A stretch of DNA of 62,210 nt, filler included, from Choristocarpus tenellus KU-1152 (lineage: Eukaryota > Protista > Phaeophyceae), in the NCBI GenBank assembly GCA_964200185.2. It is 8 parts of 8 records of this genome, joined end to end, with 100 filler letters (N's around TTAATTAATTAA, not from the genome) between each part and the next. Parts side by side here need not be neighbours in the genome. Positions count along the whole stretch, not along the records: positions 5,328 to 25,663 come from CAXNAD020000402.1; 7 more parts are not named here. One strand, given 5' to 3'. Numbering within the stretch: the first letter of the stretch is position 1; each line of letters starts with the position of its first letter. The translations under genes and the position numbers were made by a program. Below are positions 78 to 45,300 of the stretch, in pieces. Under the pieces are notes generated by a model. That model ran no database searches and was not told the origin of the DNA. It was given only the letters and a program-made list of their open reading frames with translations.

Positions 78-1513
78 TTCTGACATCCGAGAAGGTCCAT
101 CTATTTCCCCATTTTGCTCTCGAGCATGTGATCGGTGATTTCCCGTTACCGGGCCTCTGAAACTTTGAACTTTTTTTCAAGTAGTAGCTTGTCACCCCCT
201 TCCGCTAATCCATGCGTCATGTAAATCTCTGCTACCTTCCACAACCGTTGCTTCCAACCTAGACACCTTAATATTGGTCGGAATAGAAAAAGGCTTCAGC
301 ACATTGTCTCGTCCATTTGTGTCCAGATCTAAGATCGACTAATTGAGTCAAACCAATCGAGAGGTAGACAGGGTTATATTTCAAGGATCCCGAGAAAAGG
401 CAAAACGTGCGTTGTTCTTTTCAATCGCAGAAAGAGCCTTTGCTTAACTGTAGTGTCACTTTGTGTGCGGAAAGGAGGAATATAAATCTGAATACACTAT
501 TGGGCACATAAAATAATGAAATAGAGAGTATTGGACAGGGCAAAAAGATGGCTCAATTTGCAAAAGGGTCCGAAACTGCTTACCTCTCAATTGGTTCGAA
601 TCATTGTGTAATACATGGATTTAGTACAACTAAGTTTGATCAAAACTGTCAAGCTGACCGGATATTATTTAATTTACTATTGATAACTGTGGTGGAAGCA
701 CTGAATAAATTACCAGTTATAGAGAACACTTCTGGATGATGTATTCTGGAAGATTGTTCCTTGGACAGCATTGTTTGCTGGATAAATGGGGATGGGCAGA
801 GGAGGCAGGCACACCATGGGGAAGGCTTCTCATTACCATACCTGGATATGGATAACTACCACGCTCAATGTCAAACAACGGAAATTGAAGTAATCTTTTT
901 TAGTAACAGGAATCGGAAAAAAAATTGCACGTGATTTCGTAGCTCGCACCTGCCATGTTTGCATTTCCTTTACAATAACCTTCCAGAAAAGTGCATGCAG
1001 TCTCCATCAGCTTTTTCTCTGGTACATTATCCGGAGGAGCATTGGCATTATTGCCATATATATGTAGCTATGATGGGTTTATGTCTTCCTTGCAAATGCC
1101 AATAAGATTCGTCATGATGAGGGAGGTGATTTGACTCAGAAAACCGTCCCGCCTGGCCTGATTGCAGGCAATGGTATCCATCTTTAGAGAGGCTCTGCAA
1201 TACTAAGTTTGTGGAGGATGACTCACTCATCACTGCTGACGTGCTTTTGACGTACTTTCTTTCGAAGTGGCAATTTTTACTGGGTTGAGGAACGAGAACC
1301 CAAGAATTCAGAACCTACACGCTTGCATTTTCACTGTTCGGCATGTACCTGATGTTGAAGATTTATCCAACTACATTGTGCATATATGTAAGGGTACATG
1401 TAGTAGTAGCCCTGAGATATGTCGACACGGTCACAATGACGGTCGTTGTCTTTGCCACTGTAAGAAACGGTTACGTAGGGAATTTCGAAGGTAGGGTTCG
1501 GTTTTGCAACATC

Positions 1514-2030: not shown

Positions 2031-2905
2031 ATACACAGTTACACCGTTGTACCGATTGAGGTTCCTTGTCAAGCGTCCATGNNNNNNNNNNGACCTTCCG
2101 TCAGAATGAAACCATGGAATCTCTGCACGAGACCAATCCCACAGACTTGGGACCAGAGTTGTCATCAACTCTGTTCTCATGTCTTGACTGGTAGTGATGA
2201 GGCCCTGCTTTGAAGATGCTCATGAATCCTCAATTTACACTTGTTCAACATTAACCTCGTACCCTCGGTTACGGTTCGTCTTTGTTCGTCTGGTCCGTCG
2301 ATTCTCTTCACCATCACCCTTGCCTGAGTGAACCACGCCGCCACAGAATCACACGATTCACACATCAAAAGAAAATATATTCACAGGATAAGTTGTACAG
2401 TTACGGTTGGTTGTAGTTTTCATTTTGACCTCTTTCAGTCTCTGGTTGGAGATTGTTTTTATCGGTACGGTTACCATTGTTGTTACAAGTTGACAGTGGT
2501 TACAATTTGGATTTTGGGAGTATGGTCATGGTCGTACGTATCTATTTTCTATTCTTCCCCACAACAATCAACAATGATGAAACAAATAAACTTGTATATT
2601 TTATCCACTTTGAACATCAACGTTAACGATATCCCTACAACAGTCACCACTGTACGTAGATTGTCCTCCACAGATAGCATCAGCCCTCATGCTGCACGAC
2701 TGGGTAGATCATACTGGTACATATCCGACATTAGTGCGTAGAGTCCAAATATCTTGGTGGAAGCGAGGAAATGAAAACTTGGAAAAGCAGAAAAGGGGAT
2801 ACTTGTGATACCCTCACCACTATTGTGTTGTACTATATTGTTGTACTGTATTAATACAACTATTAGAAGTGTCTTCCCCTTCTTTTAGCTGGGCGACGGT
2901 CCTAC

Positions 2906-5139
2906 ATGCAGCTGAACCCTGCACCAAGGGCGACGGAGTATGCCTTCCATACAGAAGGGGGATGCACTTTTGTGACCAAGGATGGAATCGCACTTCTTGG
3001 CACGCCTACTACAGCACAGCCACCTGGCAGGAAACGATCCCGAAGCATCGGCATCAATGCATCCAAGGAGGAAATTGGTCAAGGAAATGTAGAGGACGGC
3101 TACGAGGAGACAGTAGTGCGAGTCGTTGTTCATGAGGTGACCAAAGGTGTAATCTACGTTCTCAGCATATGTCGAGTGACCCTTTTTTTGCATCTGTGAA
3201 CATATTGAACCGTCATCCTCTATATTCGTTGCTGCTCCGCAAACAGGCTCTACAACACAACTCATTTTCCTAGTCCTCCTATCATCTGCAACTTCGAACC
3301 CGTTGCCCTTACTTACTACCTGACTTGACGCGGTCTTCTTTCAGGCCCTCGCAGAGGATTTCGGCCTCTTCATGTGGCCCTCAGGAGTTGTGCTCGCGTG
3401 CCTTGTGTGGGCCCAGCGTCAATCGTTACGAGGTGTAGGGGTCGTGGAGATCGGGGCAGGAACGTCTCTGCCGGGTCTGCTAGCCGCCAAGGTATCCATG
3501 TCTACTGGGTCTGTCATTCCCAAATCCTTGAGACTTTGGGAATCGAACAATGCATTTTCTGATCGAACAAGACAGCTGTATTATGCACGTGGGGAAAGAA
3601 ATGCTCCAGTTTCTCGTTGGTCGAGAAGTGTTCTAATGGTTAGACGTATTAAACAGTAGCAAGGTATGGGAGTACCTCAAGCCCTCTCCTGAAGGACCTG
3701 GTGGTGTTCGACATTCCTTACATAGACGTGCTCCTTCGCCATGTGCGTCAGTGACGGGTGCAGTCGGAGTCGGGAGAAAAGCTACTGGCAACGAGAAGCC
3801 TTATTTTGATGCTGCAGAAGAAAATATCAATATGTACAAGAGGAGAGTTTCGACCTAAACGTCAAAGTTTTTCTCTTCTCTGTTGCCACTCGTCCCAAAC
3901 ATCGTTCTGCCGAGTGGTTTAATGTACTACTTCAAATTAGTCGACAGAGGAGTACGACAATGTCAACTGAGAGCATGTGGCCATAGTGTATGAAAACGTT
4001 AAATAGCAGTGAGAGTCCTATTGGTCTGTCGTTTCTATTCATTACTTGAATAGTACAGGGGCATGGAGTGCAGCAGCACCTACAAGGACGAGTAACATTG
4101 GTTCACAACTTACTTCCTGTAGTAAGATGGAGGATATTTTTTTTGTGATTTATTATTGTTGCTGGTCAAGACATTTTGATAGGGTAGCTTAATGTCTCCT
4201 CAGGTTAGTCTGAAAATCATCTATGGCTGTGCCTATCACCTTTGATCCATGCATTTTACTTGATCAGTAGAAAAATTCAGTAAGTATCCAATACTTACTG
4301 GTGGATACACCCCTCCTCCCCGTGAACCCTTATCTCACCTATCCCCCTCAATCTCCATCAGTTGGGGGCAAATGTAGTGCTTACTGATCATGCAGATGCC
4401 CACCAGACCCTACGCAATATCCAGGGGGCAGTTGAAGCCAACAGGCTCCTTCCCCCCCCTCCTTCTGACGACCACCAAGGATGGGATGGGGTGACACACG
4501 TTTCTGAGATAGGGTTAAGGCTAGCGATAGGACCACAGATTGGAGGTAAGGGGATAGGACTGGTGAGGGATTCTGCAACCATCTCAAGGGGGAGGGCCTG
4601 TGGCCCTGAGTTGAGGCTTGAGATAAGATATGGGAGGGGCGGTAAATTTTCTACAGAGAATACACTATGTAATGGTGATCCCCAAAAATGTAATTCAAGA
4701 CGATTTTCTTCGTTGTTTTTTTTCCAATCCCTAGAGGCAGTGTGTGCTTGCACACCAGTGCTCTAACTGCCTGGCCTGGTCCTTCTTATGCTGTTATCAT
4801 TTCTCGTATGTACTTGTGTCACATGACCGTCACTTTGAAGGTCTCGAAATTCAAAATGTAAGTGCTGTAAATAGATAGGTGTGTCCACAACCTGGTCAAT
4901 AGTTGTCTAGTGAGCCAAATATATGAGGTAGGACTCCACAAGAATCTTATGTTTGCCTTAAAGGTGTAGTCTACATCGTACATACAATCTACCACTTGTG
5001 TGCAGGAGTCGTGAACAGAGATTGTGGGAGCTCTGGGCGCTCTGGGGAAGCTCATGGCTCCTGTCGTGTGATGGGCATGACGTGGGGCTGTGTGTCTCCA
5101 GAAGCAATGCAACTGGCGATGGAAGACCCACCACCGCAA
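2906..5139 (+). CDS. METTL23: METTL23-like (Methyltransf_16 family) protein methyltransferase, 5' partial; exons 2906-3136, 3345-3491, 4362-4545, 5006-5139
   Basis: All four exons have phase-compatible GT-AG junctions. Translation includes FGLFMWPSGVVLACLVW...VVEIGAGTSLPGLLAAK|LGANVVLTD...VMGMTWG, matching METTL23 motifs (WP, motif I EIGAGxSLPG, post-I V(I/V)L(S/T)D, GLTWG). The gene runs off the contig end at 5227. Confidence 0.85.
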
Positions 5140-10932: not shown

Positions 10933-13900
10933 TCAAAATCGCTCATTCATGCGCCTTGATACATTGCGCATTCGATTGTACACCTTTCCTGGAGGTGCCC
11001 CCAGAATCAGTGCACAGATAGCATTACGTGCAACCTGCCCCAAACAAGACACATTTGAGAAAGTTTCAATACACAGTTGCAGCTTAGAATGAGATTGGAA
11101 ACAAAGTGGTCACAACACAGAGGACGAGGTAAGTTGGTGCTGAAGGGGGATTAAGGGCAGGGCAACATGAAGCATGAAAAGAGGTCAGGAAAAGTTAGAA
11201 AAGCTGAACCTAACCTAACCTAACACAGGAATGTAAAAACAACACAATCCAAGGGACCAAAATCCTCCTAGGAGTCAAGAGTAGGCACACGTTTTAACAA
11301 TTACATAAACCGGCTACGAGATACAAATCTATACATTGGTACAGATATCAACCTCAATTCTGAAGAAAAAAATTGCCTATCTGCTGAATGACATGAGAAA
11401 CTCCACGAGGCATTTGTAACAGAATGCTGCCCGACCTTGATGTTACTGAAAGATCCCAAAATATGCACACGCTGATCTGCCACAACAATCCGTGTTCGAG
11501 TGGCGTTCTCAATTGCATGGCGAGTCTTGCCTCGCTGCCCTGCTATACGTCCAATGGCACGGCTGTGGATCAAAAACAACAGAGGGCCAATAAGATAGTT
11601 ACAACCAATGCCACAGGGAGGAATACTAGATGGGGTGGGAGCAAGGACAAGAGTCAACATGTGTTATACAACAATCCTATCAAGGTACTTCAAAACCTTG
11701 AAGAGTAGTTAATAATAAAACAGTAATTTACAACTTGCAATTCGTACTACCTATTTGTGAAATTTGATCTTGCTCTGAAATTCCACAAGTAAACAACAGC
11801 AGTGCTGTACACCTTCGAGCATGTATGTATACTATATGAACAATCACTACACAAAACATACAGAACAACCCTACCCCTTACGAGGCAAACACCAGCACAT
11901 CAAAAAAAAACACGAGAGAGGAAAGCCAACTATTTAGAAACAAACTATCACAAGGAGAGGTAAAATATCGACAACACAAAAGACAAAACGTTCTCTAGCA
12001 AGCATAATACATACTCATGGCGTTCACATCTAGAGGAAAGCAATATAGATTCATGTAATACTTCTAAATGATACTTCCCCTGATTGTTCCACAAACAGAA
12101 TGTCAGCACTTCTATGTTTGAGAACATATTGTTGATATAGAGTAAAAAAATGGTCAGAAGACATTCTGCCACAAAAATGCCCCAAGCAGTTCATTAAGAA
12201 CACACAACATACTAGGCCACTGTAGCAATAAAGCCTACCCATTCTGATTTACAAGTATTTTACGGCTACATAAGCAACACAGACACTTGTAGGCATGCAG
12301 CCTCAGAGCAGACAAGATCAACAGGAAAAGGGAAATGGTGGGAGAGCAGTACCCTCATAGGGAAGTCGACAAGGCTATTGTCAGCATTGATTTTGACTCA
12401 GGTAGTAGATAAGTATGACCTGATTGAATCACAGGGCGCTCCCCTTCGTCCAAAACTAAATCATTGTATTACACAAGTTCATCTCTCCCACCTACGCATG
12501 CATTGGTATCAGTATCAACTGTTGTTCACAATGGAGGTATCCTTATAACCCTTGCAATCAACCAGAGAGTGCACCATCTCCCACACAAACAATAAAAACA
12601 TCTCAGAAAAGGATTTCCAACGTAAGGTATACACACATATACCAGGAAATAATTCCATCACACTCGTGAGGGTTTCCAAAAATCTAGGTATGCCCTCAAA
12701 ATATTGTCAAAAGTAACACTATCTCACGGTGGCAGAGCAGAACCCTCATAGGGAAGTCGACAAGGCTATTGTCAGCATTGATTTTGACTCAGGTAGTAGA
12801 TATATGACCTGATTGAATCACAGGGCTCTCTCCTCTTCCTAAATACAAACCATTTCAAACATGAAAACAATGAGAGGTAAAAAAGGTTGATATTACCACA
12901 GCATAGCCACAAACACATTGTGCCAGCCATAGACAGTCTCTTTCAAGGCGAGAGGGATGCTGACAACTATTCTTAACAGAAGAGTGCACAACACAAATGA
13001 AAAACAGGAAATAGTTGGCCGGAATTTTCTGCAGTAAATCCTGAGGTAAGTGATTAGAGCGTTGGAGGAAAGTCACTGATCTATTGACACCATGTCAGAT
13101 CTCTTCTCTTATAACGACATGATCCAAACCACCTCACCTAATAAACTATTAGCCATCATCACCTGAAACAAATGTATCTCCTCCACAAGTTCTCACCCAA
13201 ATTAATGTGTATATGGGAAAATACCTGACTTGAGTGCATGTCAATCTCTATCCACACTTTAATGAAGGGGATAATGCACATGCCAATAGGACTCCTAGAA
13301 ACAGGAAAATGTACTTGAAAAAAATATGGGGCACACAAATTATTCTCCTACAGAAGCAGTCAAGGTCATGTGCCGGCACTGACAAACTCAGTGGACGACA
13401 TGGCCTGGATTAATCATTAGGAGTTCAGTATCGTACACAGGAGAGTAGGCAAACATTGCCCTCATAGGGAAGTCGACAAGGTTATTGTCAGCACTGATAT
13501 GACTCAGGCAGTAGATATGTAAGACCTAATTGAATCATGGGACTTCATGTTGCCCCCTTCCCTCCTATGTACGATCAACTGGCATCTGCCTGGCATCATT
13601 TCCACACCACAACTCCTATGTAGATTTTGGTACATAAGCAAAGAAACAGAAACTACTAAGAAACAATCCACTGATAACAAGAATATCAATGCATAAATAT
13701 GTAAAGATCTGAAACAATCTAAGGTAAGTACCCATACCTCTCGAATGTTGACATAAAAATACATCCCAACAGGCTAGGACTAGTTCTGATGATTATGTTG
13801 AGAAAAATAGGGTCACGATTGAATCGCATCCAAGATAATCAACGACAATGGATGATATATTTGATTGATTTTTGCCTCATCCATGAAAGTGTTCTCCTTC

Positions 13901-16900
13901 AATTACCCTATAGACCTCAAAGCATCTGGCAGCAAGAATGCTTCCGATCTACAGACGCAAATTAAAGAAATAAGTGAATCAACTTTCATGATCATCAAAC
14001 CTTCCTATTCACAACTAAGAACTACACCCCTTACCCAGGGGAGCACAAAATCTACCATGACTTCTCACAAATTGAGATTGCACTAGAATCAGTAGTAGGT
14101 TGACACAGAAGAAGACTATCAAAACCTTATGGAAACAAGTAATGTGTAAGTACAAAGACAACAAAATCATTTCAAAAAAAGATATTTCCTCGTATCTTCC
14201 TAAAAAATGCAAAAAATGCTTATCAAGCTTTTCTTGTGATCTCAATAACAAACATTTTTTGTCAGATGTTATCTAACATCAACCTTTCTCTTGCATTTAA
14301 AAAAATCTCTACTTGAAACAACAGCGCAGTCCAGCGAATCAAATCCATAGCACCCACAAAGAAGAGAACGGAAAGGGGTGGAACATTTCATTACTCAACA
14401 TTTCACGATCTTACCAGCAGGGAAACAAAAGTGTCGAAAATTCATTTACTTGATTTGGCACTACAACAATACAGTTATCAACTTTCAAGTTCATTTAATC
14501 ACTAGATAAAAGCAGATCTAGTGGTCACAAAAAAGCAGTACCTCCAAAGCCAAAAGACATAATACTTACCTCAAATGGTCACCGGAGAGAGTCTTCACGT
14601 CATGAACTTCAAATGAATCAACGTAGAGGTCATCCAAACGTAACAATGCCACTGCATCCTGCCAAAAAAAACACAAAAAACAAAAAGAATAAAACCATGA
14701 ACAGCAACACAAATGTAACAGAAACATAAAAAATACTGCGTGGTCAGGGGTGTCACCCAACAGTCAACAAAGTATACTAAAACATCTAAATCATATCACC
14801 TCTGTTTAGAACACCACAACACTCAATGAACTTCTACCCATGCCTTTCAGAGGTGAGGCTGGCAAGGCACAAGTCATGCTACTAAAAAAGAAAAATACTG
14901 GCATACAATAAGCAAAAAGAGTCCACTACGCTTCCCACAACTAGACGTACACATACCAGCAAGTACAAATATCAGAGAGCACCTTCCTTTCCTGCCTCTG
15001 CCTCTCACAAATTTATAAAATTTCACCTGGACCTCAAATCCCAGCATGAAGGCCTGGATGAAGTCAGCTGTTTTTTGCAGTGCGGATCCATCTTCAGTGT
15101 GGACAGACGACTTCAACTCTACATTCCTTGTTTTTCGGTTAAACCTTCAATTATGGTGGGCAAAACAACACGAGTGTGAGTTCTACCTGGATTAAGTATC
15201 ACAAGCTACATGAGAGGGTGGGAGGACTAACCACCTTTTATAGACAGTGTTCTACATAGTAATTAACCCTATTGAAATTACTCAAGAACATTCTAGCTAC
15301 ATTGAATCTTATACACACTGAACTAAATGCTGCAGTGCATGGGGAATATCCCATCTTTGAGAGCCTCCACTGCCCTTGGGGAACACTCTTCACACTTTTT
15401 GAGAATCTCACTCCAACCCTAACTAACCCTAACCTGTGCTTATTAATTGAAGCTAACAAGTGACAGTGAGGGTTCCCCAGGCACAATGAGATCTCCACTG
15501 TGCACTCCACCACTTTCTGACCAAAGTTGAGATTGGATCATACCATTGTTCAAATGTGTGTTACGTCAAACACCAATTTAGACAATAATATACTCCCCAT
15601 GAAAAAAGGTCATCCTCTCACCTCATCAGCAACCAGTAAATAACAAAAAATGACCACTCACCCAGGCATGGAGCAATAGCAGTGCAGCCAAAAGCATAGT
15701 AAGTCATACTGACACTTTGGGGCAACTGAATCACCAGTCAAAATTTTACCTAAAGATTCAAAAAAGACAAAAAAAAAAAGGTGATACAGGAACTACCCTA
15801 TCTCTTAGGGATACAGCATCAAAACAGAAATTATCAAAAAAGAAATCTCTACTGTGTAGCACATCAAGTCTTGTAATCAAAGAGATTATCTGGACCACAC
15901 ACGTTCAAAGGATACATTTTCAATTACAATTGTCCTTTCCAAAGACAAAGTTCACACTCAGAAACTACTATACCCTAGGACTCACACTCTACCTGATCTG
16001 CAGTTTCATGTGCTCTACAGTTGGGGTGACAAGGTTCTCCCAGTTAAGGCGAAGTGGTGTAAGGCGATGCGGTGGACATCGAATGCGCCGGAAATCGTCC
16101 TTGCCCCCCTGTCACAGTTCAATATAGAAGCATTCATGAGCGTTGGCGAGTAGACATGTGCTTCACAATCAGTTTTTAATCAACCACAATCTATTAATCC
16201 AAAACATCCATGTATGAACCATTGCCAGAATCTAAGAGGACCAAACCTAGCAAGGAATATTTCTGTAAAATCATTGATGTCGCTGCCACCCATTCAGTAA
16301 AAAATTGAACAGAAGACTTGGGTAGAACATTGAACTCAGCAATCAGCTACCAATTATAACCCTACCATACTCAATGATATAAAACAAGTACGCAATGGCA
16401 CAAAGACTATCACTTTCAACATTTTCTCATTAAGCTCCTTTCTTTCACTGCCACACCAGGAATCAACAAGTGCCTCGATACTCTAATATCACCAAGGACA
16501 TGTTCACCTTCAAAACCCTCCACGTTTTACTCTCCAACCAGCTAAAGTTCAGTAAAACTTCAAGCCCACAACCTCCATGAATTATCCCCTTTAAGTCAAC
16601 TTTTTTTCAATGCAAAACAAGCAATTAAGAAACACCATGAATACTGCTATACACCTGCATGATGCCATTTTTTTAGACAATGATGTAAATTTGGATAATA
16701 AATGTGAATCAATGCATGTCATGAGTTGAACACTTTGTACAAGAACACCGTATGTCAAGTCCTGTACAGCAATCTATGTTTAAAGACTCAAAGCACAGCA
16801 AATAAGGAATGAGGACACAGTTCACTCTCATTTAAAGTTTCAACTCTCAACAAGGGAAAACCATTACAGTCTTCAAGATAAACCCCCTACATGACTTCCA

Positions 16901-19348: not shown

Positions 19349-22300
19349 ATGTCAACCCATGGCTGGCGGCATCCTACCGTGGGCTGTGGGGGAGAGAGCA
19401 TGCGGAGCGCTTTCGTCCCTTCCCCAAATCTTCAAGGGGACTTGCGATATGTCTTGCGCAGTGAGAGGCGTCAGGTGGAATGTGAGGGCCGTGGTTACCG
19501 CACCAGTACTTCAATCTCTACACCAACAATACTAGAGGTGGAGCAAAGAGGGGAGACAAAACCGCGAGAAAGAAGAAGCCAAATAGCTTTACCTCGAGGT
19601 GGAGAAGGGGTACGTAATGCTTATGGCGAGGGAGGTCCGAATGATGATAAGGATAAAACTCTGTTGTTGTCATCCACAAGAACTCCCAAAGTCTCAAACA
19701 CAGAGCTCAACGATTTTGTGACATATGCACAGGGGTTAGGGGTGGAGCGGAACTGGCGAGGGGTGCTTATGGCTATGGATGCTAATCGGGCCAAGGGCTT
19801 GAAGATGAATATCTCAGTCTACAACACCTGCATATCAGTCGTTGGAAGTTGTGGGAGGTGGGAGGAATGCTTGAAACTACTCTGTGACATGAGAGCAGAA
19901 GGTATAGCCCCCACTATCGTCAGTTACAGCGCAGCGATCAAGGCCTGCCGCAGGGGAGGCGAATGGCGAAAAGCTGTGGAACTCATCGGTGATATGCGTG
20001 CTAACGGAGTGACCCCCAGAGTCTGTAACTATTCCTCTGTAATCGCAGCCTGTGCGGACGTGGGCCAGTGGGAGCGCGCATTGAGTCTCCTGGACGAGAT
20101 GCATCGGGCCCACTGTGCCCCCGATATTGACACGTACAATGCTGTCATAAGGGCCTGCGGAAGAGGGGGGCAACTAAATCAAGTTCACTCTTTGCTTGAT
20201 GACTTGTTGAGGGAAAAGCTGACTCCAACGACGACAACCTTCGCCGAGGCGATGAGAGCATGTTGTCCAGACGGGAAGTGGAAGGAGGCGCTGTCATTTC
20301 TTCAAGGAATGAAAGAGCATGGCCTTGAGGCAGATGTATACAACTACAGCTCTGTCATCAAGGCGTGCGGAAACGGGGGTCAGTGGAGGAATGCGTTATC
20401 CCTATTGGAGGAGATGAAGGCTGCAAAAATATGGCCAAACGTTATAGTGTATACAACAGCAATTGCTGCTTGTGGGGATGCGGGGGAGTGGGAAGCAGCC
20501 GTGTCCTTGCTAAAGGAAATGAAGGCTGCAGGCTTTGAAGCTACTGTCGTCACCTTCAATGCAGCAATCAAAGCCAAGGGTGAAGTTAGCCAGGTAATGC
20601 GCATCAAATCCCTGACAGAGCATATGCGTAACTCTGGTGTAGCCCTCAACTGCGCGGGGTATAAAACCTTGATCTCCGCTTGCTGCAAGGCCAGAGATTG
20701 GCAACAGGCCTTGGCTCTAATGGATGATATGCAAGGAGAGGGACGTTGCAGCCCAGATGCAGACACCTACAAAATGATCATGATAGCCAATAGCAAAGAG
20801 GGGCATTGGGAGCGTGCTCTTGCAATGTTTGGGGAGATGCGTGCTGTAGGCAATGGTATCCACCCCAGCTTATCATCCTATAATGTGGCCTTGAGGGTAT
20901 GTGCAAAGGCTGGACAATGGAGAGAAGCAGTATTGCTGTTGGGGGAGATGCAGAGGCAAGGTGGTAGGATAGACCCTGATACAGGCAGCTACAACTCAGC
21001 TATCTTGGCTTGCACAGCCGCAAGGAAGTGGAAGCAGGCCCTCTCTCTTCTGCATGAAATGAAGAAGGCGGGCATTACCCCAAGTGAGGGAACTTTGAAC
21101 TCAGTTTTGGGTGTAGCTGCAATGGCAGGTTGTCTAGGAGATGCCCTTCCCATACTCTTTGAAATGGCAGAGGTTTATCCTGAGCTAGGTGAGGTTGTCT
21201 ACACTGCAGCCATCACAGCTTCGTCCAAGTGGGGGCAGTGGGGGAGGGTGATTCCTCTACTGAAGGAAATGCAGGCCGCAGGGATAAAGCCCAACACTTT
21301 CATTTTTACAGTCGGCGTTAGGGCCTATGGCAAGCTGGGGCTCTGGACTGAGGCTGTGGGTCTCCTAACAAAGATGAAATCAGAGGGTGTGAAACCTGAC
21401 AGTTACACATACCAGGCAGCAATTACAGTGTGCACAATGAATGGCAAGGGGGTGCGTCAAAAGTGGGAGTGTGCCACTGCCTTGATGAAGGAGATGAAAG
21501 AGAGAGGGATAGTGCCAACACTTCTCTGCTACAACTCACTCATCAAGGCCTGTGGGAAGATGGGACAGTGGGCCCAGGCACTTTTGGTGCTGGACGAGAT
21601 GCGGACAGGGGGGGTCCCTCCAGAGGAATCCACGTATGTGCACGCTATCATGGCATGCAGTACTGCAAAACGTTGGAAAGAGGCACTTTCACTCCTTGAT
21701 AAAATGAAGGCCACCGGTGTCCCACCAGGATTGGCCAGTTTCAATGCTGGCATCATGGCATGCGCGAACACAGGGCAGTGGAAAATGGCCTTGTCTATGC
21801 TGGGAAAGATGGACAAGGAGGGTGTTTCACCAGATGTTGTGGTTTGCAATTCAGTCATATCCGCATGTGCCTCTGCAGGTGAATGGAGACAAGCGGTGTT
21901 GCTCTTGAAGAACATGCGGAGGCTGGGGGTGCCACCAAACACTGTTTCTTTCACCTCGGCAATTGTGGCTTGTGGCAACGAAGGCCAGTGGGAGAAAGCT
22001 TTGTCACTGCTGGAAAACATGCAGAGGGAGGGTATGGCCCCCAACATCACCCATTTTAATGCAGCCATCACAGCTTGCAACAGGTCTTGTACCTGGAACG
22101 GAGCTCTTCAGCTGATGGATGCAATGCGGGTGAGCAATGTCAAGCCCAATGAAATCAGCTACATGCAAGTGATCAAGGCATGCATAAAGGGAGGCTGGCC
22201 ATGTCAGGCGAAATCCTTTTTGATGGAGATGAAATTGCGTGGGATTGTTCCCAATGCTGTGGGGAAAATGATCATATCCAGTGCGCTCAATAGCAGTCAC

Positions 22301-22414
22301 TCTGGTAGGAATGTGAATCGCAGTGGGGCAGCAGGAGAGGAATGGGTCACCCTAATCAAGCTTATAGATGAGATATTCAAGGAATCAGTGAAGACAGAGG
22401 GGGGGCAGGGCTGA
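19349..22414 (+). CDS. P-class pentatricopeptide repeat protein, ~23-24 tandem PPR motifs, no E/DYW or SMR domain
   Basis: Uninterrupted 1021-aa ORF with repeated ~35-aa units of the type xxxYNxxIxACxxxGxWxxALxLLxEMxxxGxxP from about aa 152 to aa 975. Confidence 0.95.
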   Translation: MSTHGWRHPTVGCGGESMRSAFVPSPNLQGDLRYVLRSERRQVECEGRGYRTSTSISTPTILEVEQRGETKPRERRSQIALPRGGEGVRNAYGEGGPNDDKDKTLLLSSTRTPKVSNTELNDFVTYAQGLGVERNWRGVLMAMDANRAKGLKMNISVYNTCISVVGSCGRWEECLKLLCDMRAEGIAPTIVSYSAAIKACRRGGEWRKAVELIGDMRANGVTPRVCNYSSVIAACADVGQWERALSLLDEMHRAHCAPDIDTYNAVIRACGRGGQLNQVHSLLDDLLREKLTPTTTTFAEAMRACCPDGKWKEALSFLQGMKEHGLEADVYNYSSVIKACGNGGQWRNALSLLEEMKAAKIWPNVIVYTTAIAACGDAGEWEAAVSLLKEMKAAGFEATVVTFNAAIKAKGEVSQVMRIKSLTEHMRNSGVALNCAGYKTLISACCKARDWQQALALMDDMQGEGRCSPDADTYKMIMIANSKEGHWERALAMFGEMRAVGNGIHPSLSSYNVALRVCAKAGQWREAVLLLGEMQRQGGRIDPDTGSYNSAILACTAARKWKQALSLLHEMKKAGITPSEGTLNSVLGVAAMAGCLGDALPILFEMAEVYPELGEVVYTAAITASSKWGQWGRVIPLLKEMQAAGIKPNTFIFTVGVRAYGKLGLWTEAVGLLTKMKSEGVKPDSYTYQAAITVCTMNGKGVRQKWECATALMKEMKERGIVPTLLCYNSLIKACGKMGQWAQALLVLDEMRTGGVPPEESTYVHAIMACSTAKRWKEALSLLDKMKATGVPPGLASFNAGIMACANTGQWKMALSMLGKMDKEGVSPDVVVCNSVISACASAGEWRQAVLLLKNMRRLGVPPNTVSFTSAIVACGNEGQWEKALSLLENMQREGMAPNITHFNAAITACNRSCTWNGALQLMDAMRVSNVKPNEISYMQVIKACIKGGWPCQAKSFLMEMKLRGIVPNAVGKMIISSALNSSHSGRNVNRSGAAGEEWVTLIKLIDEIFKESVKTEGGQG

Positions 22415-25400
22415 TGGGGACCATGAGTGACTACTGATATTGATACTTTGGTCAGCACAAATTGGTTGGAGTTTTACAGTAGGAGAGATTAAGTTTATTC
22501 CACTTTAGAACCATAGCCGGGGAGGTTGGTGTCTGTTTGCTTTGAAACCTTTTTTTTTTCAAAATATTTTTGGTAAGACTGTTGCTTGGAGGAGGGATTT
22601 CGTGTGCCTTTAATTTGTTGCTGTGCATGGCAACATTGTAGAAATTGTCTTTGGATTGTGGATGTATGTGTATGTGTGTGTAGTGTCCCCTACGCTGTGA
22701 GTAGAGAGTATATAATACTGTAGTCCAGATTTTCAGTACATTCTGCATTAAAGAATAAGTATGCGCCTTTGCCTTTTTCATATCGAAAATACGACCAGAG
22801 TCGGTTTTTTCCGTCCTTCTCTGCTTTCACTTTCCTTCCCGATCCAGCTCTGTGCTAGAAGTGAGAAGAGAACTGAAGACTGGGGTGAACCATAATCCCA
22901 ACAAAACAATCCGTTACATTACAGCTATGACACCACTTCTTTTCTAATTCCATGTAATGCCCAGATTTTTTTTGTACCATCATATTAAAATGGCAGTATG
23001 AGGGTTTTGCAGTGCTCTGCTCCTACCTCTCTCTCTCCTGTCCCTAATAATACTCAAGTCACTTCTAATTATGGTCATGATGCAGACAACAGGTACCGTC
23101 CATGATCCCAAAAGGAGTCATGTTGCAAATGTCCAAGTACTTACAATGCTCAGTGGAGGTTGGCATGAAGCAGGGTCAGCAGGGATGAACTGCTGTTTTG
23201 AAAGCTGCAAGTCATGTCTTTTTTAATATCTTCACCTTTTTGTTGCAATTTCCTATTCCTTGGGATGTGCTTGGTACATTAGGATTGTTATCAGACAGTA
23301 TCGCTCCTTTTCAATCAATGCTTTAGGTTTATGGATCTAGGTGCAGTGTACTGGGTTGCACCTCATCACACCACTCACACACAGTATTTCAACATACGCA
23401 TTGTACTATGTGGTAGCATTTTGTCTACCTTGAACTGTCCCAAGGGTTGTTGCCCAGTCTTCAAAATATCTTGAGGGCATAGTAATGGCTGTTCGTGAAG
23501 ATATAACGTTTGGAAGCAGAAGATCTTACACTTGATTGACAGAGAGTGCAGAGCTAACTTACGCGTGTAGTGGGGGTTTTATACCTTTAGAAGTGAGCAT
23601 GAAATTTCAGTTGGTTTTATGGAGAGAAGACCATGTTAGAAAAAAATACATCTGAAGAGTTCTGTAGCAGGTGACTTCAAAGCAATTTGTCCACAGTGTG
23701 TAGGGTCCGGGGCCATTATGACTAATCATCTTCATGGAATCGAGTGGTGCTGTGGGGAAACATGTGTAGAGTACACAGGTATACAGGGAAGGCATGGATC
23801 TACCACCCTACGCTGTAGGTTCGGAGCAAGAGAAAGGAGCAAACATATTATTCTCCATTTGAATTCAGAAGGCTGGAAGGTGTTAGGACATAAAAAAGAG
23901 TGAGCGCATATTTGTTAGGCACGTGCCTAAAATTTCAAAGGGAACACCTCCATCTCAACCAATTTCTGTGCTTCAAATCACACTGTATCCTTGTGCTACT
24001 TCGGAATATTAAAAAAACACACGTTTACCTTTTGATGGCATAGAGCTTGGTATATAGTGCAAAAACTCGATATGATTGGTGGAGAGAGTATTGCATGATA
24101 CTTCGAGATCGTGTACAATAAAAGCTCGGTTGGTTGGAGGCACAGGAAAGCAGTGGTGCAGCATACCTGGTAGTAAAATAGTAAATAGATGAATGCCCTT
24201 CACATTTACGACAACTGTTACTTTTTTCGGGGTTCTCTTACAGGGTTCTTCTCTCCCTCCTAACATCTGGAAAATGACGCTCTCTATTTCAGTATCATTA
24301 GAAAAATTGGAATCTTTCAGCTTGTAGTGTCTGTTATCAATTACAACAATGTTAGGTCCTTTATTCATTCATGTCCGTTCCAGAATATTTTCAAGGATCA
24401 GTTCTTCTCTTCCAATATACGTTCTATACCCCAAAACTTACACAAAATCTTCATATAAAGAACAATGTTTGGCGCTCTTCCTTTCCGTACAACGTCCGTC
24501 GTCCAGACAGAACAATGGTTCTGTTTGCTCAATTATTACTCCACGAAGGGGTCAACTTGCCACTGATGTATTATTATTTGTTCACATCATTCATCTTACC
24601 TGAAACAAAAGACGAAAAAAAGGAAAAAAATGGCAAAAAAAAATTTATACAATAAAGGATGTAAGTGCTTTCCTGTTAAACCACTCTCATATCTTGTCCA
24701 TAACGTCCGTTGTCGGGCAAACGCACTAGCCGATTCGTGTTTGAAATGTCTGTTATTCTGGAGAACACTTGGGGCAATTCTAGAGCGGTCCATAATAACA
24801 GCAATTACTGTCATTCGGTCTGTAACTTCTATTTTCAGGGCAACGGCTTGTGACATGTAAGGATAAATGCTAAGATAGATGTGTCACGGAAATATTACGT
24901 TTTCCAAGTTACAAAAAATATGCACAGGAGGGGCGGGAAGGGTTGCACACAAGGCGATGCGATGTCTGTATGATTTTACTTTATAGAGCATATCCATGTT
25001 GGGGGGTGTGCCATCAGCCCGAACATACGTTGCCCAACAATAAGGTTAAAATCCTGGAGAATTATTTGCCCCAGAGTCAGAAAAAGAGACTATTGATATT
25101 GGAGGATATCAAACATTGAGATACCACTGTTCCGCTAATGCAAATAGTCCCGCGATTCTCCGCAAACGGCCATCTCAATCTTCGTGTTTTTCATTTCGTC
25201 CATTTCAGGATCACATTTCCATATGTTTATCCTCCCTTTGTATGGAGTAGGGAAAGCGACCCTGCTCCGATTGGATCCCACTACCTCTGATTTTGTCATT
25301 TTTTCTTAATTTTGGTTAGTATGTCCATCACACTTTATTTGTATCCCCACAACTTCCTCTTTTTCCCATATATTATTTCTTCCTATTCCTTGCTTGTACA

Positions 25401-38123: not shown

Positions 38124-39619
38124 GTTGAAGATCCAACCACGTTTGTTCTTGAAACCTGAGCGAAGGGGAATCGTGTGAGGCTCATAACCTGTTGTGAAAC
38201 CTGATTTTGTATGAGTTGTGTATTGTTGTGATATATCTGGTTTGTGACGAAGGAGATCATAGCGCAACAAAGCGCTGATAAATTAGTTCTGGTAAGTCTG
38301 ATGACATGTAGTATTCAGTCAGACAGTGTTCGATGTGAAAATATGTTTGGTTGTGCTGTGATCAACATGGTTAGAGGCAAGTGTGTGTCATAGTGCAACA
38401 AGACACCTGCGGGTTCAGTTTGATGTGTCTGAAGGGATGTCTTACTCAATCAGACTTTGATTGAAGTGAGATGGGTACTGGTATGTCTGTGGCATATTTT
38501 TCTCAAGCAGACGGTGATAGACAGAAACTGTGTGGTCATTATTTGAGACATCCAAATGAAGAAATTCATCCTCTGTGAAGAGGGTTGTCACCTTGGCAGA
38601 GAAGAGTTTCGAAGGATGGTTTTAATTCTGTTTATATTACATCCCAGCGTGTTTCTTATACGTGTTGCAGGGTGATGGATGGCTTACGATGATGGGACAA
38701 TGTCAGACACGTAAAAATAATAACCAACACATCCTATGCAACTGATAAATTGCGCCATGCAGATGAACAAGTAAAAACAAAGAAGAAACAAGAAGACAAG
38801 CTTGAATCCATATTAAACATAACTAATGTCCTCATAGTATGTGTGTATAATGGACAGCGACAATTCATATGCTTTCTATCCACTGTGCCGTACTTACAGT
38901 GGTTGGGTAAAGTATGATGATGAACTAATGATGGGAATGGGAATAGCGACCAGTGCAATGGACGAATCAGCATTCAGTGTGAACTGACGATACTGTATCG
39001 TATCAAAACAAATCGAATGAGTAGCCTATGTTTTAACATTTTTGTGGTAATGCTTTCAATGCATCTTCTCTCAGCGTCAGTGTCGCGGCCCCGTGATCCA
39101 TTTCGCGATTTGATTATGCTGATGCGCCACACTACTCGCACTTTCTCATCACCTAACATCGTACTGGGTGTCACACAGTACTTGCTTCTCCGTTGCCTCT
39201 CGACAGAGAAGGTGCCGAGGGTAGATCCAGAGGGCAGAGTGGCCTTGGCGACTCTCCTTGTCTCACCTTCGTGGTTCATGTTGCTGTGTATGTCACGGGT
39301 ATGTGTGCTCACAGAAAGTCTGCAAAAGGCGAAAAAAATATTTCTGGAAATCTTGGGGTTTGCTAGGTATCACCACACCATCCAAACTTGAGCAGATACC
39401 TACCCCGAACCAGTTTTTCGCAATGAGTTTAGCCAACCACTTCATTTTTGTCCGTTTTGAAGTCGTGACTTTCAAAATTGCGCTGGAGGAGATGTTCCCC
39501 CGCGTTTTGCCATTATTTGATCGGGACATAGCTCCCGTTCCCCAAAGCCTGGATATTCATGGATACAAACCTTCAAAAGCTCTTGTGATACCGTTTCATT
39601 TTATGTATATATCGTTGTA

Positions 39620-40998
39620 TAACTGTTGTGGTGATATGGTGGGAAAACACGATTGCCACAGAGGACGAAGCTACTGGGACCAACCACTTTAGGCATTCTC
39701 CTTCTAGCCTTCAATGTGAAGAAATCTAAATTCTTTCCATGGGTTGATGAAAAAATAAGAGGAGGCCTACCTGCTGATAGACTCAACTTCAAAGAATTTT
39801 CCCCTCGCCAATGAAAATCTCCACCAGATTGATGTCCAGCTTGAACCATTGACAAGAGACTGAACTTTCACTCTGGAACCAGCAACACATTGCACAGAAC
39901 AAAATAATAAACCTTCTCACTCTGTATAGAACGTAGTGGTAAGTTTCCAACTATGGTAGCACGAATTTCTGCCCTGTACCAGCAGTCACGGACTTTCCAC
40001 TAACAGGTCGTTGGTCTATCAAGGCAATGGGGTTGTTGGTCATATGTGCGGAACACCCAGTATCAAAATATCACACATTATCCCACTGTTCAATGTTCTC
40101 ATCCTTCACCATCAAGAAACCTCCAAGCATCTCCGGCGGTCTATTATTTCCACCAATCACCTTCCCTCGACCACGCCTCTTCCTCTGTGTAATCACTGCA
40201 CCACTGTCTACAACTTGTTTGGCTGCCGCCATAGCCACTGCACGTCTTGGACAATTTCTAGCTTTGTGTCCCAATTCACTACAAATGTAGCTTGTTAAAG
40301 GTGGGGAAGAAACAGATGGACAAACAGACATGTAATGCGCTCCACTGCACTTGAAATATCTTACACCATGTTGTGCACCCAATAATGTAGAACGCAATCC
40401 ATGATTGAAAGTCGAGCTTCCACTAGGCATCAGCGCTCCATTGTGGTTCCCAAGACCACCGTTCACCAACCTCTTGTTCATCCTGTAAGTTTCGCAAACC
40501 CTCTTCTGAAGTTGCAACGTAGCCGTTCGACTTACATCGGAAATCTGACGTATCTCGACCATATACTCTGCAGCAACACAGTTGTGAATGACTGTCAGCT
40601 GCTCTTCCTCGTCTGGCTCAATACCAATACTCCACAACTCCTTCACCAGCTTTTCCATCTCTTGAATAATATCAGCAGGATCCGTCCGAACTGGTAGACA
40701 CAATTCATGTAAGCTTGGTCCTCAAAATCGCTCATTCGGTGCTACCATTTCTTTCAAAACGGTCTCTCAGTGCTGGAAAAGCTTCAGATGCGCTGTCATG
40801 ATTATCAACAATGTCGAGTGCAAGTCCACCTACACTCACAACCAGCCCAGCCAACGCCATGCTGGCTTCTTGTACTTCCCGGCATGTCCATCTTGACGTG
40901 TTGCTTCCTTCAAGGCCCACCCCGATGTGGTCTTGAGATAATAGTGCATTCATCCAACCACCCATGGAAGCACAAGTTAACAAGCGCTTCTTGTACAT
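39620..40998 (-). mobile_element. Ty1/Copia LTR retrotransposon remnant (gag, zinc knuckles, protease, start of GAG-pre-integrase), pseudogenised
   Basis: Gag-like SASEAFPALRDRFE and IIQEMEKLVKELWSIGIEPDEEEQL; knuckles FKCSGAHYMSVC and ICSELGHKARNC; protease motif FDTGCSAHM near 40045-40075; VLLVPE*KFSLLSM. Stops and frameshifts are present. No LTRs, RT or integrase core were recognised. Confidence 0.8.
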
Positions 40999-41059
40999 GG
41001 CTCAAAGTATCTGGGGGGAGGGGGGGGGGGGATACACCAAGGTGTCCATTCGGGCCCTG
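40999..41059. mobile_element. Terminal fragment of the 7421/18109-type MITE abutting the Copia gag
   Basis: ggctcaaagtatctgggggg...tacaccaaggtgtccattcgggccctg is the reverse complement of 7540-7599. Confidence 0.8.
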
Positions 41060-42306
41060 NNNNNNNNNNNNNNNNNNNNNNNNNNNNNNNNNNNNNNNNN
41101 NNNTTAATTAATTAANNNNNNNNNNNNNNNNNNNNNNNNNNNNNNNNNNNNNNNNNNNNCACTCACAACCCTCACACACCCCGCCAAAGGCCTTTCTCCC
41201 CCCCCCCCCCCCCCCCCCCTCCTTCCCCCAAACAGACTCCATTCCAAACCCCTTGTTGTCTTCATCCCTCACTCAATGAAAACTTTTTTGTGTGTCCGCC
41301 AACGCACTTCTTGGCCTAGAGCTGTACGACAAGTTGGGGGGGTGGGTGGGGTATACGCGCAACACACGCATGGAGAGGCGTATACATCGAGCATCCACAC
41401 AACTCAAACCATCCGTATCTTCAATGCACATCTTGCACACAAAATGCATGCAGCAGTTCTTCACATTTCCCCCACGTATCCAATTAGACGGACTGGCTCC
41501 CTCCACCCGCCCAATAGCAAACATTGCCTCATCGCGACGTTTTTGTTCCATTTGTTCTTTCCTCCTTTCTCATTGGTCCATCTTTTTTCTCCTCTTCACA
41601 TGACCCAGAAGACGTAAACAAGAAAGCCTCCGTTGGCTATGAAAGCCACAGCACAAAACACTATCACAATTGCATTTCTGCTGATGCCAGAAGAATCTCT
41701 TGGCTGGGCATCTTCACCACCTTCGTCTTCCAAGGTCTCTTCTTCCTGTGTACGCCACACACACACAGGACAAAATTAGGAGTAAGAAGTTAGGGACTTT
41801 TCTAACGGAAATATCCACGACTGAGAGAGTTGGTTGCATGCAGCATAAAATGGGGGTGCGGTGTTCAAATAGTTGACGGACATGAACAAAACCGTATTAC
41901 CTCAAAACATGCACCAAATTGTCCCAAATATGTATGGGAATAAACCTATGTCTTATATATTCCTTCAGCCACTCCTCCCTCCCTCATTTCCCACCAAAGT
42001 GATAAAATTAACTGGGATTACACTTGGTCTTTTTTTTCTTCATAAATCTACGCTTTTGAAGTGGGCTACCGACTACAACCCAGTCCGTAGACAATTCTGA
42101 TGACCCTAGTCCGGACATGCCACAACATACTTGAAACTGTATGACCCTGTGGGCTGGACAGGTGCAAATGCTTGGTGGAACTGGTCACAACATCTTACAA
42201 AATACTGGAAGCAGTCTAGCCTGCGGACTGGACTCTTTGCATACATACATACAACTGACCTGATGAAAAGCCCAATTAAAGGCCCGAGCATCTTTGTGGC
42301 ATACCA

Positions 42307-42346
<40 letters not shown>

Positions 42347-45300
42347 ATCTAGATCAAATATGCTTGTCCTATCTTGAGAAACACCTTAACAACCACACTC
42401 TTGTCTGTCCAGCAAATCTGGAGGTTTACTTCAAAGGTGGGAGGGGCAAATAAGCTGTTTTACATTTCTTTTTTTGCCATTTTGGTCACTCCTGCAAAAC
42501 CCATACCCCTTTTCGTCTATACCTTCCACCCAAAGAAGGTACAGATTCTTTGGCACCAACAAAAAAAGACACGTAAATACATCCTCAATACCTTTTCCAA
42601 GATGAAGGTACACCTTATCCACGACAAAGGACTCTCGAGTCCCCCACAACAACCACAACTGTACACATCAAGGGCTGTCCACGCCTCTCCCACAACCAGA
42701 TTGCACCGGCTATATTTTGAGGGCAATGAAGTAAATCTGGCATTACCTTTTGAGAATACACCTCTACGCTACATTGTATAGTCAACTTACACCACAGCAG
42801 AGGCATAAGGCCGGTTTGTTCCGTGAGGGTACCTCTCAAAACTTACCACAGTCCCGAAATAATCTAACCATGCCATGTAAGAGTCATTAGAGTTAGGGTT
42901 AAGTCATTCATCGCGGCGGAAAGGAACATTCTGCAGGGTTAGGGTTAGGGTTATCACAGAGCAAAACATGCGCTGATAACTACACGTTGGTCAAATCCTC
43001 TAGTCATACAACGACGCCACAGGGTCTGGGGCTCCTTTGGTTTGTTCGATGGGCCTTGACCTTTATTGTCTCTTGAATTTCCTTACACTAAAAGAGAGTA
43101 GGATCAACACATTGGGAATCATTTTTTCTTCTGAATGCATAATGCACAAAGTCAAAACGTTTGCGTGCATGCATGCATCTAAACATCTGCACTCGGGGGG
43201 GTATGTACCTGTTGAGAAAATACATAAAAAAAAGTTCTGTCCATGTGCGTAACTGTCGTATTCCAGAATGGTCTCATCGTCCAACAGCACCTTCAAAAGA
43301 CACCTTTTTTGGAAGAGTCAAAACAGACTACTCACTCCGTTTTAGGTATTCCTGACTGTTTAAAATTTGCGGGCCCAGGTGCACCCAAGCATCCCTCTGC
43401 AGAGGGCGAGAGGGACTACAGAGTGACCCCACGTCTCAACTTTCACAACATGTGACAGGGGTTGCTGACACCAAGAGACTGGCAGACCCCCCAAAATGGC
43501 ACCACCACGCACCCCTCTTCACACATCACCACCACACCAAACACAAAGGAGAACAACGAGAGATGAACAACCAACCCGCACATCGAGATGAACATCCATG
43601 GATTGCCCACTCGAGGAGTTATCTTGCATTCAAAAGTCATCGAGATGAACATGTAGGTTAGCAGAGACTATGCAGAAGACGGAACTTTGACACACAGAAA
43701 AGCATACGCCCTCAACTTACACCTCCTCTCACCTCTGCAAGCCCCCCACCAACTTCCCCCGATGAGGATCCATTCACCACCCCGTCAGACGCCCTGACAA
43801 CCACAGGACCCCCTTCCAGGCCACCACCAACTCCCACCTCTTTCAGTCCATCCATGGGGTCATCCTCCGTCCCCACCACCGAATCCTTCTCCATGCCAAC
43901 AACCTTGTCAATCCAGTTCGCTGACTTGAGTTTACCCCACACCCTGATGGTGGGGTCATCTCTTTGGTAATGTTCCGCCCCCATGCTCTTTACAATTTCA
44001 TCCTGTACAGGTGGGTCACCTGAGGGAACCTCCTGCTGCTCATGGGACCCATCCAAGTCCGAGGGTCTCGCACCGATCCCATCTCCTGCCACCTGGGACT
44101 CAGGCTCAGCTCTTGTCTGCGACCCACCATCTGTCTCTCCTGCCTCCTGACGTATTTCAGCACAGAGTGGAGGACATGAAGAGAGAACAGAAGTGCAGAA
44201 GGAAGAAAGACTTTCATGACCTCGTTATACAATGGGTATAACCTTGAACTTGAAACTACATCAGAGCGAGAGATGCAATAGACAGTCGGTTTTGAGGGAG
44301 AGACAAGGAAATCACACTCCTTTTGAGGGTAAGGGTTGGGTCCTTAGTCAGGAGGAGTATTCCACAAGAAGCTGTCTTTCACTTGCACTCATCTGTTTCA
44401 CATACAATAGCATCCTCCTCTCCCCTTTCTCCAGATAGAGGAAGATGCATAAAACACTCATCGTTTGAAGCCAATAAAATTACAGCAAATATCCCAGTAC
44501 ACCCCTATGGTTCAAGAAATATCCCAGTATATTCCTAAGTGATGGTTTAAGGCTGTGCCAGTTTGCAAGACTTTTTACCAATTCCTCGTAACAAGGTTCA
44601 CGAAGAAGGATCATCCCTCATAGAAGGCAGAGTAGGAGAGCAATGCAATGTTCAATGGGCTGACAGCATTGTAGATCATAGTGACCTCTGATTCTGACAC
44701 TAACCATATGCTATACTAGAGAAGAGCTACTTTACACGCCCATGAGCAACAATCTTTCTGTACCAAAAATGTGAGTGTGGGGATGGGGCTATGTAGGTGG
44801 ATGGGAAGGTGACAATGCCGAGAACTTGTAGTAGTTAGATGGAAGAGCACTGGGGCCATTTCAGCAAATAAGAAAAAGTGAGGAGAAAAGTCGGCCATTC
44901 TCCCCTACACACCGTTACCATTCGACGTCGCTCCTTGATCACATTGTCGCCAATCCATCCACTTTGCAGGTGGTTAGGGGAAGAAGACGAGTCGGCGCCA
45001 TACGAGCGGCCACGGATTCGAGAGGTTGATCGTCCAGACCGAACCTGCTGGGGGAAGTTCGAACGGAGGGTGGGCCTGAAAGCCAGTTCATTGGAAAGGC
45101 AAGGCTTGCCAAGTGTCAGCCCTACCACCTGGCATCTGTGAGGGACTCGCGAAGCCTACGACTGGGAACAAGACTAAACTCAAGTCCCACCAGAGTACAT
45201 GTTGACAGATCTTCATTGAGGGGTGTATTTCCTGCTCTTTATCCTACGTGGTCCCAAACGCATGAGATATTCATCCGATCGTCCCTACTTGATTTTTCCT

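Follow-up and report, generated by a model that had tools for sequence, protein, structure and literature searches.

In the canonical C/D motif of small nucleolar RNAs (snoRNAs) of the box C/D class, G-A, A-G and U-U pairs precede a G-C pair made by position 6 of RUGAUGA and position 1 of CUGA. The Guillardia theta nucleomorph snoRNAs GtNM-R12 to R14 carry AUGAUU and AUGA at these boxes, a combination that has been interpreted as compensatory (PMC6461891). Binding of the archaeal protein L7Ae is weakened by single substitutions at these two positions and is recovered by the double change that restores the pair (PMC6461891). Intronic snoRNA clusters are a known organisation in plants and algae, among them those of Chlamydomonas (PMC7671301, citing Chen et al. 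2008, Genetics 179:21), and ribosome-biogenesis genes are a typical class of snoRNA host (PMC7671301). Accessory base-pairing has been reported for more than half of C/D snoRNAs and can overlap the guide duplex; in yeast C/D snoRNAs such elements stimulate methylation (PMC5389607). Here we describe three repeated units within a single intron of a PNO1 homologue of Choristocarpus tenellus KU-1152 (Phaeophyceae; GenBank assembly GCA_964200185.2). The window, meaning the whole stretch of DNA that was analysed, comprises 62,210 nucleotides (nt) and joins 8 parts of 8 records with filler between them; the units lie in the 20-kb piece at positions 5,328-25,663, which comes from CAXNAD020000402.1. 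We consider it likely that they are paralogous genes for one lineage-specific box C/D guide snoRNA of 83-85 nt, a reading that draws on sequence comparison.

The units form a three-member direct-repeat family that spans positions 12337-13541 of the plus strand and is read as snoRNA on the minus strand. Each minus-strand unit has the layout 5'-CCC(U)-RUGAUUC-22 to 24 nt-CUGA-9 or 10 nt-RUGCUGA-22 nt-AUGA-GGG-3', and the final 14 nt of the 22-nt spacer before box D make up the putative D guide, UUGUCGACUUCCCU. Their parts are as follows.

12352-12436, minus strand: snoRNA unit 1, 85 nt
12426-12432, minus strand: box C of unit 1, GUGAUUC
12405-12411, minus strand: D'-spacer core of unit 1, UAUCUAC
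12398-12401, minus strand: box D' of unit 1, CUGA
12381-12387, minus strand: box C' of unit 1, AUGCUGA
12359-12372, minus strand: D guide of unit 1, UUGUCGACUUCCCU
12355-12358, minus strand: box D of unit 1, AUGA
12434-12436 and 12352-12354, minus strand: terminal CCC/GGG stem of unit 1
12743-12825, minus strand: snoRNA unit 2, 83 nt
12815-12821, minus strand: box C of unit 2
12789-12792, minus strand: box D' of unit 2
12772-12778, minus strand: box C' of unit 2
12750-12763, minus strand: D guide of unit 2
12746-12749, minus strand: box D of unit 2
13459-13541, minus strand: snoRNA unit 3, 83 nt
13532-13538, minus strand: box C of unit 3, AUGAUUC
13504-13507, minus strand: box D' of unit 3
13488-13494, minus strand: box C' of unit 3, GUGCUGA
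13466-13479, minus strand: D guide of unit 3
13462-13465, minus strand: box D of unit 3

The sole difference between units 1 and 2 is a 2-nt deletion in the C-D' spacer, and unit 3 is an older paralogue of unit 1. Box D' is CUGA, and box C', RUGCUGA, departs from UGAUGA at a single position. With spacers of 24 and 22 nt and a D'-C' loop of 10 nt, the units match the architecture of a two-spacer C/D snoRNA. An earlier sequence-only reading of this DNA had claimed three copies of about 85 nt with box C/D architecture in one PNO1 intron, on the host strand. The copies are found at those coordinates, each 83-85 nt long and each with boxes C, D', C' and D.

A generic scan for C/D motifs was run on both strands of the 20-kb piece. 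It demanded a box C variant followed after 45-130 nt by a box D, a Watson-Crick 4b-4n pair (position 6 of the C box with position 1 of the D box) and a terminal stem of at least 4 base pairs (bp), and it returned precisely the three units and no other match. Across the whole 164-Mb assembly, BLAST finds only three copies, all in the same orientation and in one intron, and a covariance model built from the three units recovers the same three loci only. These searches rule out a dispersed repeat or transposable element, including the high-copy, randomly oriented kind that the sequence-only reading had named among the findings that would refute it, because only three copies exist in the assembly. 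The sole additional match to the model is sub-threshold (contig C4366, 1358-1445, plus strand; 26.6 bits, genome-wide E = 1.6), with boxes C and D broken. It has UGCUGACAA...UUGU.GACUU in common with the units, and either chance or the decay of a fourth copy could account for it.

The C/D motif itself departs from the canonical form in a consistent way. Box C is RUGAUUC and box D is AUGA in all three copies, and both the GA dinucleotides and the U-U position are retained. Box C's sixth base and the first base of box D form U-A instead of G-C in every copy, which preserves a Watson-Crick pair. The proposal that U-A compensates for G-C at this position thus holds for each of the three copies, and it has a precedent (PMC6461891). 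This variant is not new, since it is known from cryptophyte nucleomorph snoRNAs.

The pattern of conservation among the units follows the expected functional elements. Units 1 and 2 agree at 83 of 85 aligned positions, compared with 54 of 85 in their 40-nt flanks (Fisher p = 7e-9). For units 1 and 3 the count is 75 of 85 positions inside and 41 of 85 in the 40-nt flanks (Fisher p = 2e-8), the latter being about what is obtained at random for an optimised alignment. Identity falls from 88-98% within the units to about 50-60%, close to random, in the flanks, and it does so exactly at the CCC/GGG ends. The 10 differences between units 1 and 3 are confined to the spacers, the D'-C' loop, the first position of the stem and the R residues of boxes C and C'. 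None of the 10 touches UGAUUC, CUGA, UGCUGA, AUGA or the 23-nt block CCUUGUCGACUUCCCUAUGAGGG, which contains the D guide and box D and is invariant in all three units. Invariant boxes and an invariant 14-nt segment among diverging spacers and flanks are what had been described from the first inspection, and the differences do avoid both boxes and guide. Single-base differences among three runs of organism A occur in the host intron at positions 11932, 12152, 12263, 13011, 13129 and 13911; none of them falls within a snoRNA unit.

These comparisons bear directly on the reading under which the units encode no functional RNA and are instead a local intronic triplication or decaying pseudogenes, kept similar by gene conversion and bearing coincidental motifs. 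Such an origin would suit the short terminal stem and the lack of a confirmed orthologue and of a matching Rfam family. Gene conversion fails, however, to explain why the 10 differences of unit 3 spare the four boxes and the guide, or why conservation ends exactly at the stem. Four boxes, their spacing and an antisense element to ribosomal RNA (rRNA) also co-occur, in the orientation of the host. We regard this explanation as very unlikely, and the three units are probably a genuine, functional box C/D snoRNA triplet.

The predicted guide pairs with a segment of the large-subunit (LSU) rRNA. UUGUCGACUUCCCU and LSU AGGGAAGUCGGCAA can form 14 bp, comprising 13 Watson-Crick pairs and one G-U pair at guide position 11. 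The sequence AAGGGAAGUCGGCAAA stands in upper case, denoting conservation, in the Rfam RF02543 eukaryotic LSU consensus, and it is also present in an environmental LSU. The antisense element had been put forward as 14 nt long, with one G-U, and directed at a conserved LSU segment; all of this agrees with the Rfam consensus and the environmental LSU. The organism's own nuclear LSU was not found in the assembly with exact, 1-mismatch or 3-mismatch patterns or with the Rfam LSU model, and the LSU searches gave only the plastid 23S and a decayed piece on contig C3564. This LSU-like piece (2700-3700, L027) scores 205 bits over 1 kb and has many broken helices, and the fragment within it reads AAUAGAUAAGGGAAUUCGGCAAAAC, which agrees with 13 of the 14 target positions. 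A further contig, C10314 (L026, L028), contains the 3' end of the small-subunit (SSU) rRNA and the 5.8S rRNA followed by about 4 kb that is not ribosomal DNA (rDNA); it is either a chimeric contig or a truncated rDNA copy.

The predicted target at +5 from box D is the first A after GGG, in AGGG[A]AGUCGG. Its register was set from the Rfam consensus and a published Arabidopsis table. The six mapped modifications Cm1847, Cm1850, Gm1855, Cm1860, Am1871 and Um1892 can be reconciled with the consensus only by putting Um1892 at the U of AA[U]GUAG. With the U34 site placed at this U, the predicted A lies 12 nt downstream and would correspond to Arabidopsis 25S A1904 and, by the same offset, to yeast A1900.

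A second contact between the units and the LSU may exist. In the C-D' spacer, a core that is invariant among the units, UAUCUAC (CUUAUCUAC in unit 1), is complementary over 7-9 nt to GUAGAUA(AG). This GUAGAUA segment of the rRNA directly abuts the guide target on its 5' side, and spacer and guide together cover 21 contiguous nt. When spacers are shuffled, a 7-nt match occurs anywhere in a 140-nt window in 9.5% of cases and abuts the target in 1.5%. The core may act as an accessory pairing element; at these frequencies we treat it as a lead and not as a result. The spacer duplex begins at position 4 from D', and its length does not allow it to be called a second methylation guide with confidence. 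As a candidate second guide directed elsewhere the D' spacer was also rejected, having no complement of at least 10 nt with fewer than two G-U pairs in this genome's own SSU fragments or 5.8S rRNA.

In the Rfam structure line, GUAGgUA and GGG are marked as the 5' strand of a long-range helix, and AAGUCGGCAAAaUA, which comes next, as an unpaired junction. A real C/D small nucleolar ribonucleoprotein could thus serve mainly as a transient folding chaperone of the pre-LSU rRNA and not in methylation, occupying through 21 contiguous nt the 5' strand of this helix and the start of the adjoining single-stranded junction. The Rfam marking of GUAGgUA and GGG as a helix strand and of AAGUCGGCAAAaUA as unpaired would suit such a role, as would the joint coverage of GUAGAUA+AGGGAAGUCGGCAA by the D'-spacer core and the D guide, and the fact that the site is unmethylated in Arabidopsis, with tables that give no yeast or human equivalent. 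On the other side, the guide lies against box D in precisely the register that methylation uses, and the extra 7 nt of pairing exceed chance only marginally. Nothing in the data separates a chaperone from a guide, and we judge a primary chaperone role to be very unlikely. The least probable of these alternatives, that a real snoRNA has its true target in another RNA (small nuclear, transfer, SSU ribosomal or messenger) and that its LSU match is fortuitous, would account for a guide U where perfect pairing to a conserved G needs C and is helped by an LSU that could not be read, but a 14-bp match ending at box D is expected by chance at only about 1e-4 against roughly 5 kb of rRNA by our estimate, and neither the SSU fragments nor the 5.8S rRNA of this genome contain a complement of at least 10 nt with at most one G-U pair.

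The host of the proposed guide snoRNA genes is consistent with this function. A spliced contig from run X1 joins position 11562 to 14570, so that the intervening sequence has CT..AC ends on the plus strand, equivalent to GT..AG on the minus strand. The intron and its neighbouring exons are as follows.

14570-14661, minus strand: PNO1 exon upstream of the host intron, matching yeast Pno1 residues 163-198
11563-14569, minus strand: host intron of the PNO1 homologue, 3007 nt, GT..AG, from the spliced contig of run X1
11434-11562, minus strand: PNO1 exon downstream of the host intron, second KH domain, matching yeast Pno1 residues 199-249

The minus-strand reading frame matches the Pfam domain KH_PNO1_2nd (E = 1.6e-16), above the curated cut-off. 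A weaker match further upstream corresponds to Pno1 residues 146-169, with solved Pno1 structures as reference. The exon pieces were searched one by one. The Pfam match, the matches to Pno1 structures and the spliced contig together support the initial assignment of PNO1 as host and of the units to its sense strand. The 5' splice site is about 1030 nt away from the units and the 3' splice site about 790 nt. In run X1, contig depths are 56-62 over the host intron (three contigs), about 21 over two neighbouring introns and 260-490 over exons; this is a hint only that the host intron or pieces of it persist longer, since contig depth cannot rank the parts of a gene. Elsewhere in the 20-kb piece, an uninterrupted 1021-amino-acid frame at 19349-22414 on the plus strand encodes a pentatricopeptide-repeat protein with 18 PPR_2 stretches (E = 7e-142).

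If these units are expressed, they would be transcribed within the PNO1 pre-messenger RNA. Three units far from the 3' splice site cannot be obtained by trimming one debranched lariat, and cleavage between units is therefore required; exonucleolytic trimming would then follow. The expectation that an intron with several snoRNAs needs endonucleolytic processing, raised when the locus was first read, agrees with plant, Chlamydomonas and Ostreococcus clusters (PMC7671301). Folds of units 1 and 2 show longer pairing between flanks, and these modelled stems could serve such cleavage, but flank pairing does not exceed that of shuffled flanks (P = 0.5, 0.12 and 0.14). Trimming would halt where Snu13, Nop56, Nop58 and fibrillarin protect the RNA, and these core proteins would assemble on the C/D kink-turn (RUGAUUC/AUGA) and on the C'/D' motifs. 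The kink-turn would keep its tandem G-A and A-G pairs and its U-U pair, with U-A taking the place of the adjoining G-C. Fibrillarin, for which a gene is present in the genome, would then 2'-O-methylate the nucleotide paired with the fifth guide position, which is the first A after GGG. Three copies probably simply raise the dosage of the RNA.

The units could not be assigned to a named snoRNA family, as had already been supposed, in Rfam covariance searches of the 20-kb piece and of unit 1. Over the piece, no match to an Rfam family at E <= 10 coincides with a unit, and the 116-nt stretch around unit 1, searched with the laxest filters, gives a single row, a microRNA match with 10.5 bits and E = 9.3. 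A sub-threshold Rfam match to the Tetrahymena C/D snoRNA TtnuCD13 (26.5 bits, E = 2.1) occurs at 23827-23893 on the minus strand, where clear C and D boxes are lacking. The guide string does not occur in the searchable supplements of papers on Ostreococcus, plant-family, Arabidopsis and nucleomorph snoRNAs, and a full-text literature search for it retrieves only rDNA primers and no snoRNAs. No NUGA box comes after the remaining exact occurrences of AGGGAAGTCGACAA in the genome (L011-L013), which were set aside as chance matches.

A metagenome scan for the guide followed by box D yields 41 loci, which we estimate to be about the chance expectation; most lie in long open reading frames of GC-rich contigs. 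One of these candidates, with UGAUUA...AUGA and a 6-bp stem (L042/L058), was rejected as a homologue, being in an open frame of a compact genome beside a thioredoxin-like gene, and L051, L063 and L068 were rejected because they are inside a 1768-amino-acid open reading frame. Another locus (L052; Ga0308021_10079680, 1202-1295, plus strand) contains a 70-nt unit whose boxes are the canonical CUGAUGA and CUGA, together with a perfect UUGCCGACUUCCCU guide and a terminal stem of 5 bp. It could be a homologue from some other eukaryote, directed at the same LSU site. Its contig has 69% GC, and an open frame on the opposite strand makes the case ambiguous.

Several observations weigh against a lineage-specific guide snoRNA. 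The complementarity is to the eukaryotic LSU consensus, with the organism's own nuclear LSU missing from the assembly. The tables show no methylation lying between Um1892 and Um2114, either for Arabidopsis or in the adjacent cross-species columns. The predicted A is not a mapped Arabidopsis site, and the same tables give it no yeast or human equivalent; absent from these tables, a methylation site here would be lineage-specific. No orthologue is confirmed, and nearly all of the 41 metagenome matches are expected by chance. Within the units, the stem adjoining the boxes is a short CCC/GGG helix of 3 bp (4 with a wobble pair), and the single mismatch of box C' falls where a G-A pair is expected. 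Stems formed between the flanks do not surpass those of shuffles, so the external stems provide no covariation support. The abutting complementarity of the spacer reaches only P ~0.015 by shuffling, and the public run data consist of contigs, which cannot resolve the small-RNA ends of an 85-nt RNA.

A broader reading would give the locus more weight. In it, the triplet would define a methylation site that is new with respect to the model organisms, at the A that opens the unpaired stretch behind the 5' strand of a long-range LSU helix, and the snoRNA would hold 21 contiguous nt of rRNA in a bipartite clamp formed by the D guide and an accessory element in the D' spacer; the UGAUU/AUGA combination, which cryptophyte nucleomorph snoRNAs share, could then be a heritable nuclear trait of the red lineage and not an isolated case. 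We think this combined reading unlikely. The lineage in question follows from the plastid: the only rbcS match in the genome is on plastid contig C1 (103874-104170), which indicates a red-type plastid and an organism that is neither a green alga nor a plant. The same contig has an inverted rRNA repeat at 39392-44033 (minus strand) and 114881-119522 (plus strand), with a 16S-23S spacer of about 410 nt. Nuclear snoRNAs are poorly catalogued in algae with red-type plastids, and finders that demand UGAUGA and CUGA miss real genes with a co-varied U-A pair in the C/D motif. The units would extend the intronic, multi-copy organisation of snoRNAs beyond the green lineage and, within an LSU segment that is universally conserved, add a candidate methylation site specific to the lineage. 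They leave the understanding of snoRNA mechanism unchanged.

Among described systems, U34, snR62 and AtU34 act on the same LSU stretch as the proposed guide snoRNA. Their site is the U of AA[U]GUAGAUAAGGG (Arabidopsis Um1892, yeast Um1888, human Um2837), and the UAUCUAC core of our units pairs within the stretch that they target. Counting +5 from D', however, would point to a U two positions downstream of the U34 site with only 7-9 bp, whereas the A indicated by the 14-bp D guide is the target of no listed snoRNA. The short complementarity beside the guide target resembles the extra pairing elements of yeast snR13, U18 and U24, which sometimes overlap the guide duplex as in unit 1; in contrast to those elements, the putative Choristocarpus contact consists of 7-9 nt of sequence complementarity (P ~0.015).

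In its organisation, the locus resembles the clusters of rice, Arabidopsis, Chlamydomonas and Ostreococcus tauri, where several units, often isoforms, reside in one intron of a protein gene (PMC7671301). Those clusters likewise have frequent ribosome-biogenesis hosts and are released from a polycistronic precursor (PMC7671301). It differs from them in belonging to a host with a red-type plastid that is neither green alga nor plant, and in carrying a guide without an Rfam family. The non-canonical pair is the same as in GtNM-R12 to R14, with box C AUGAUU and box D AUGA (PMC6461891), but the predicted targets of the nucleomorph snoRNAs are different (SSU-G1666, LSU-G2082, LSU-A1038 and LSU-G2150), and theirs are nucleomorph genes whereas the Choristocarpus units are nuclear and intronic. 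The guide is new in relation to all of these systems, while the genomic arrangement and the kind of box variation are already known from them.

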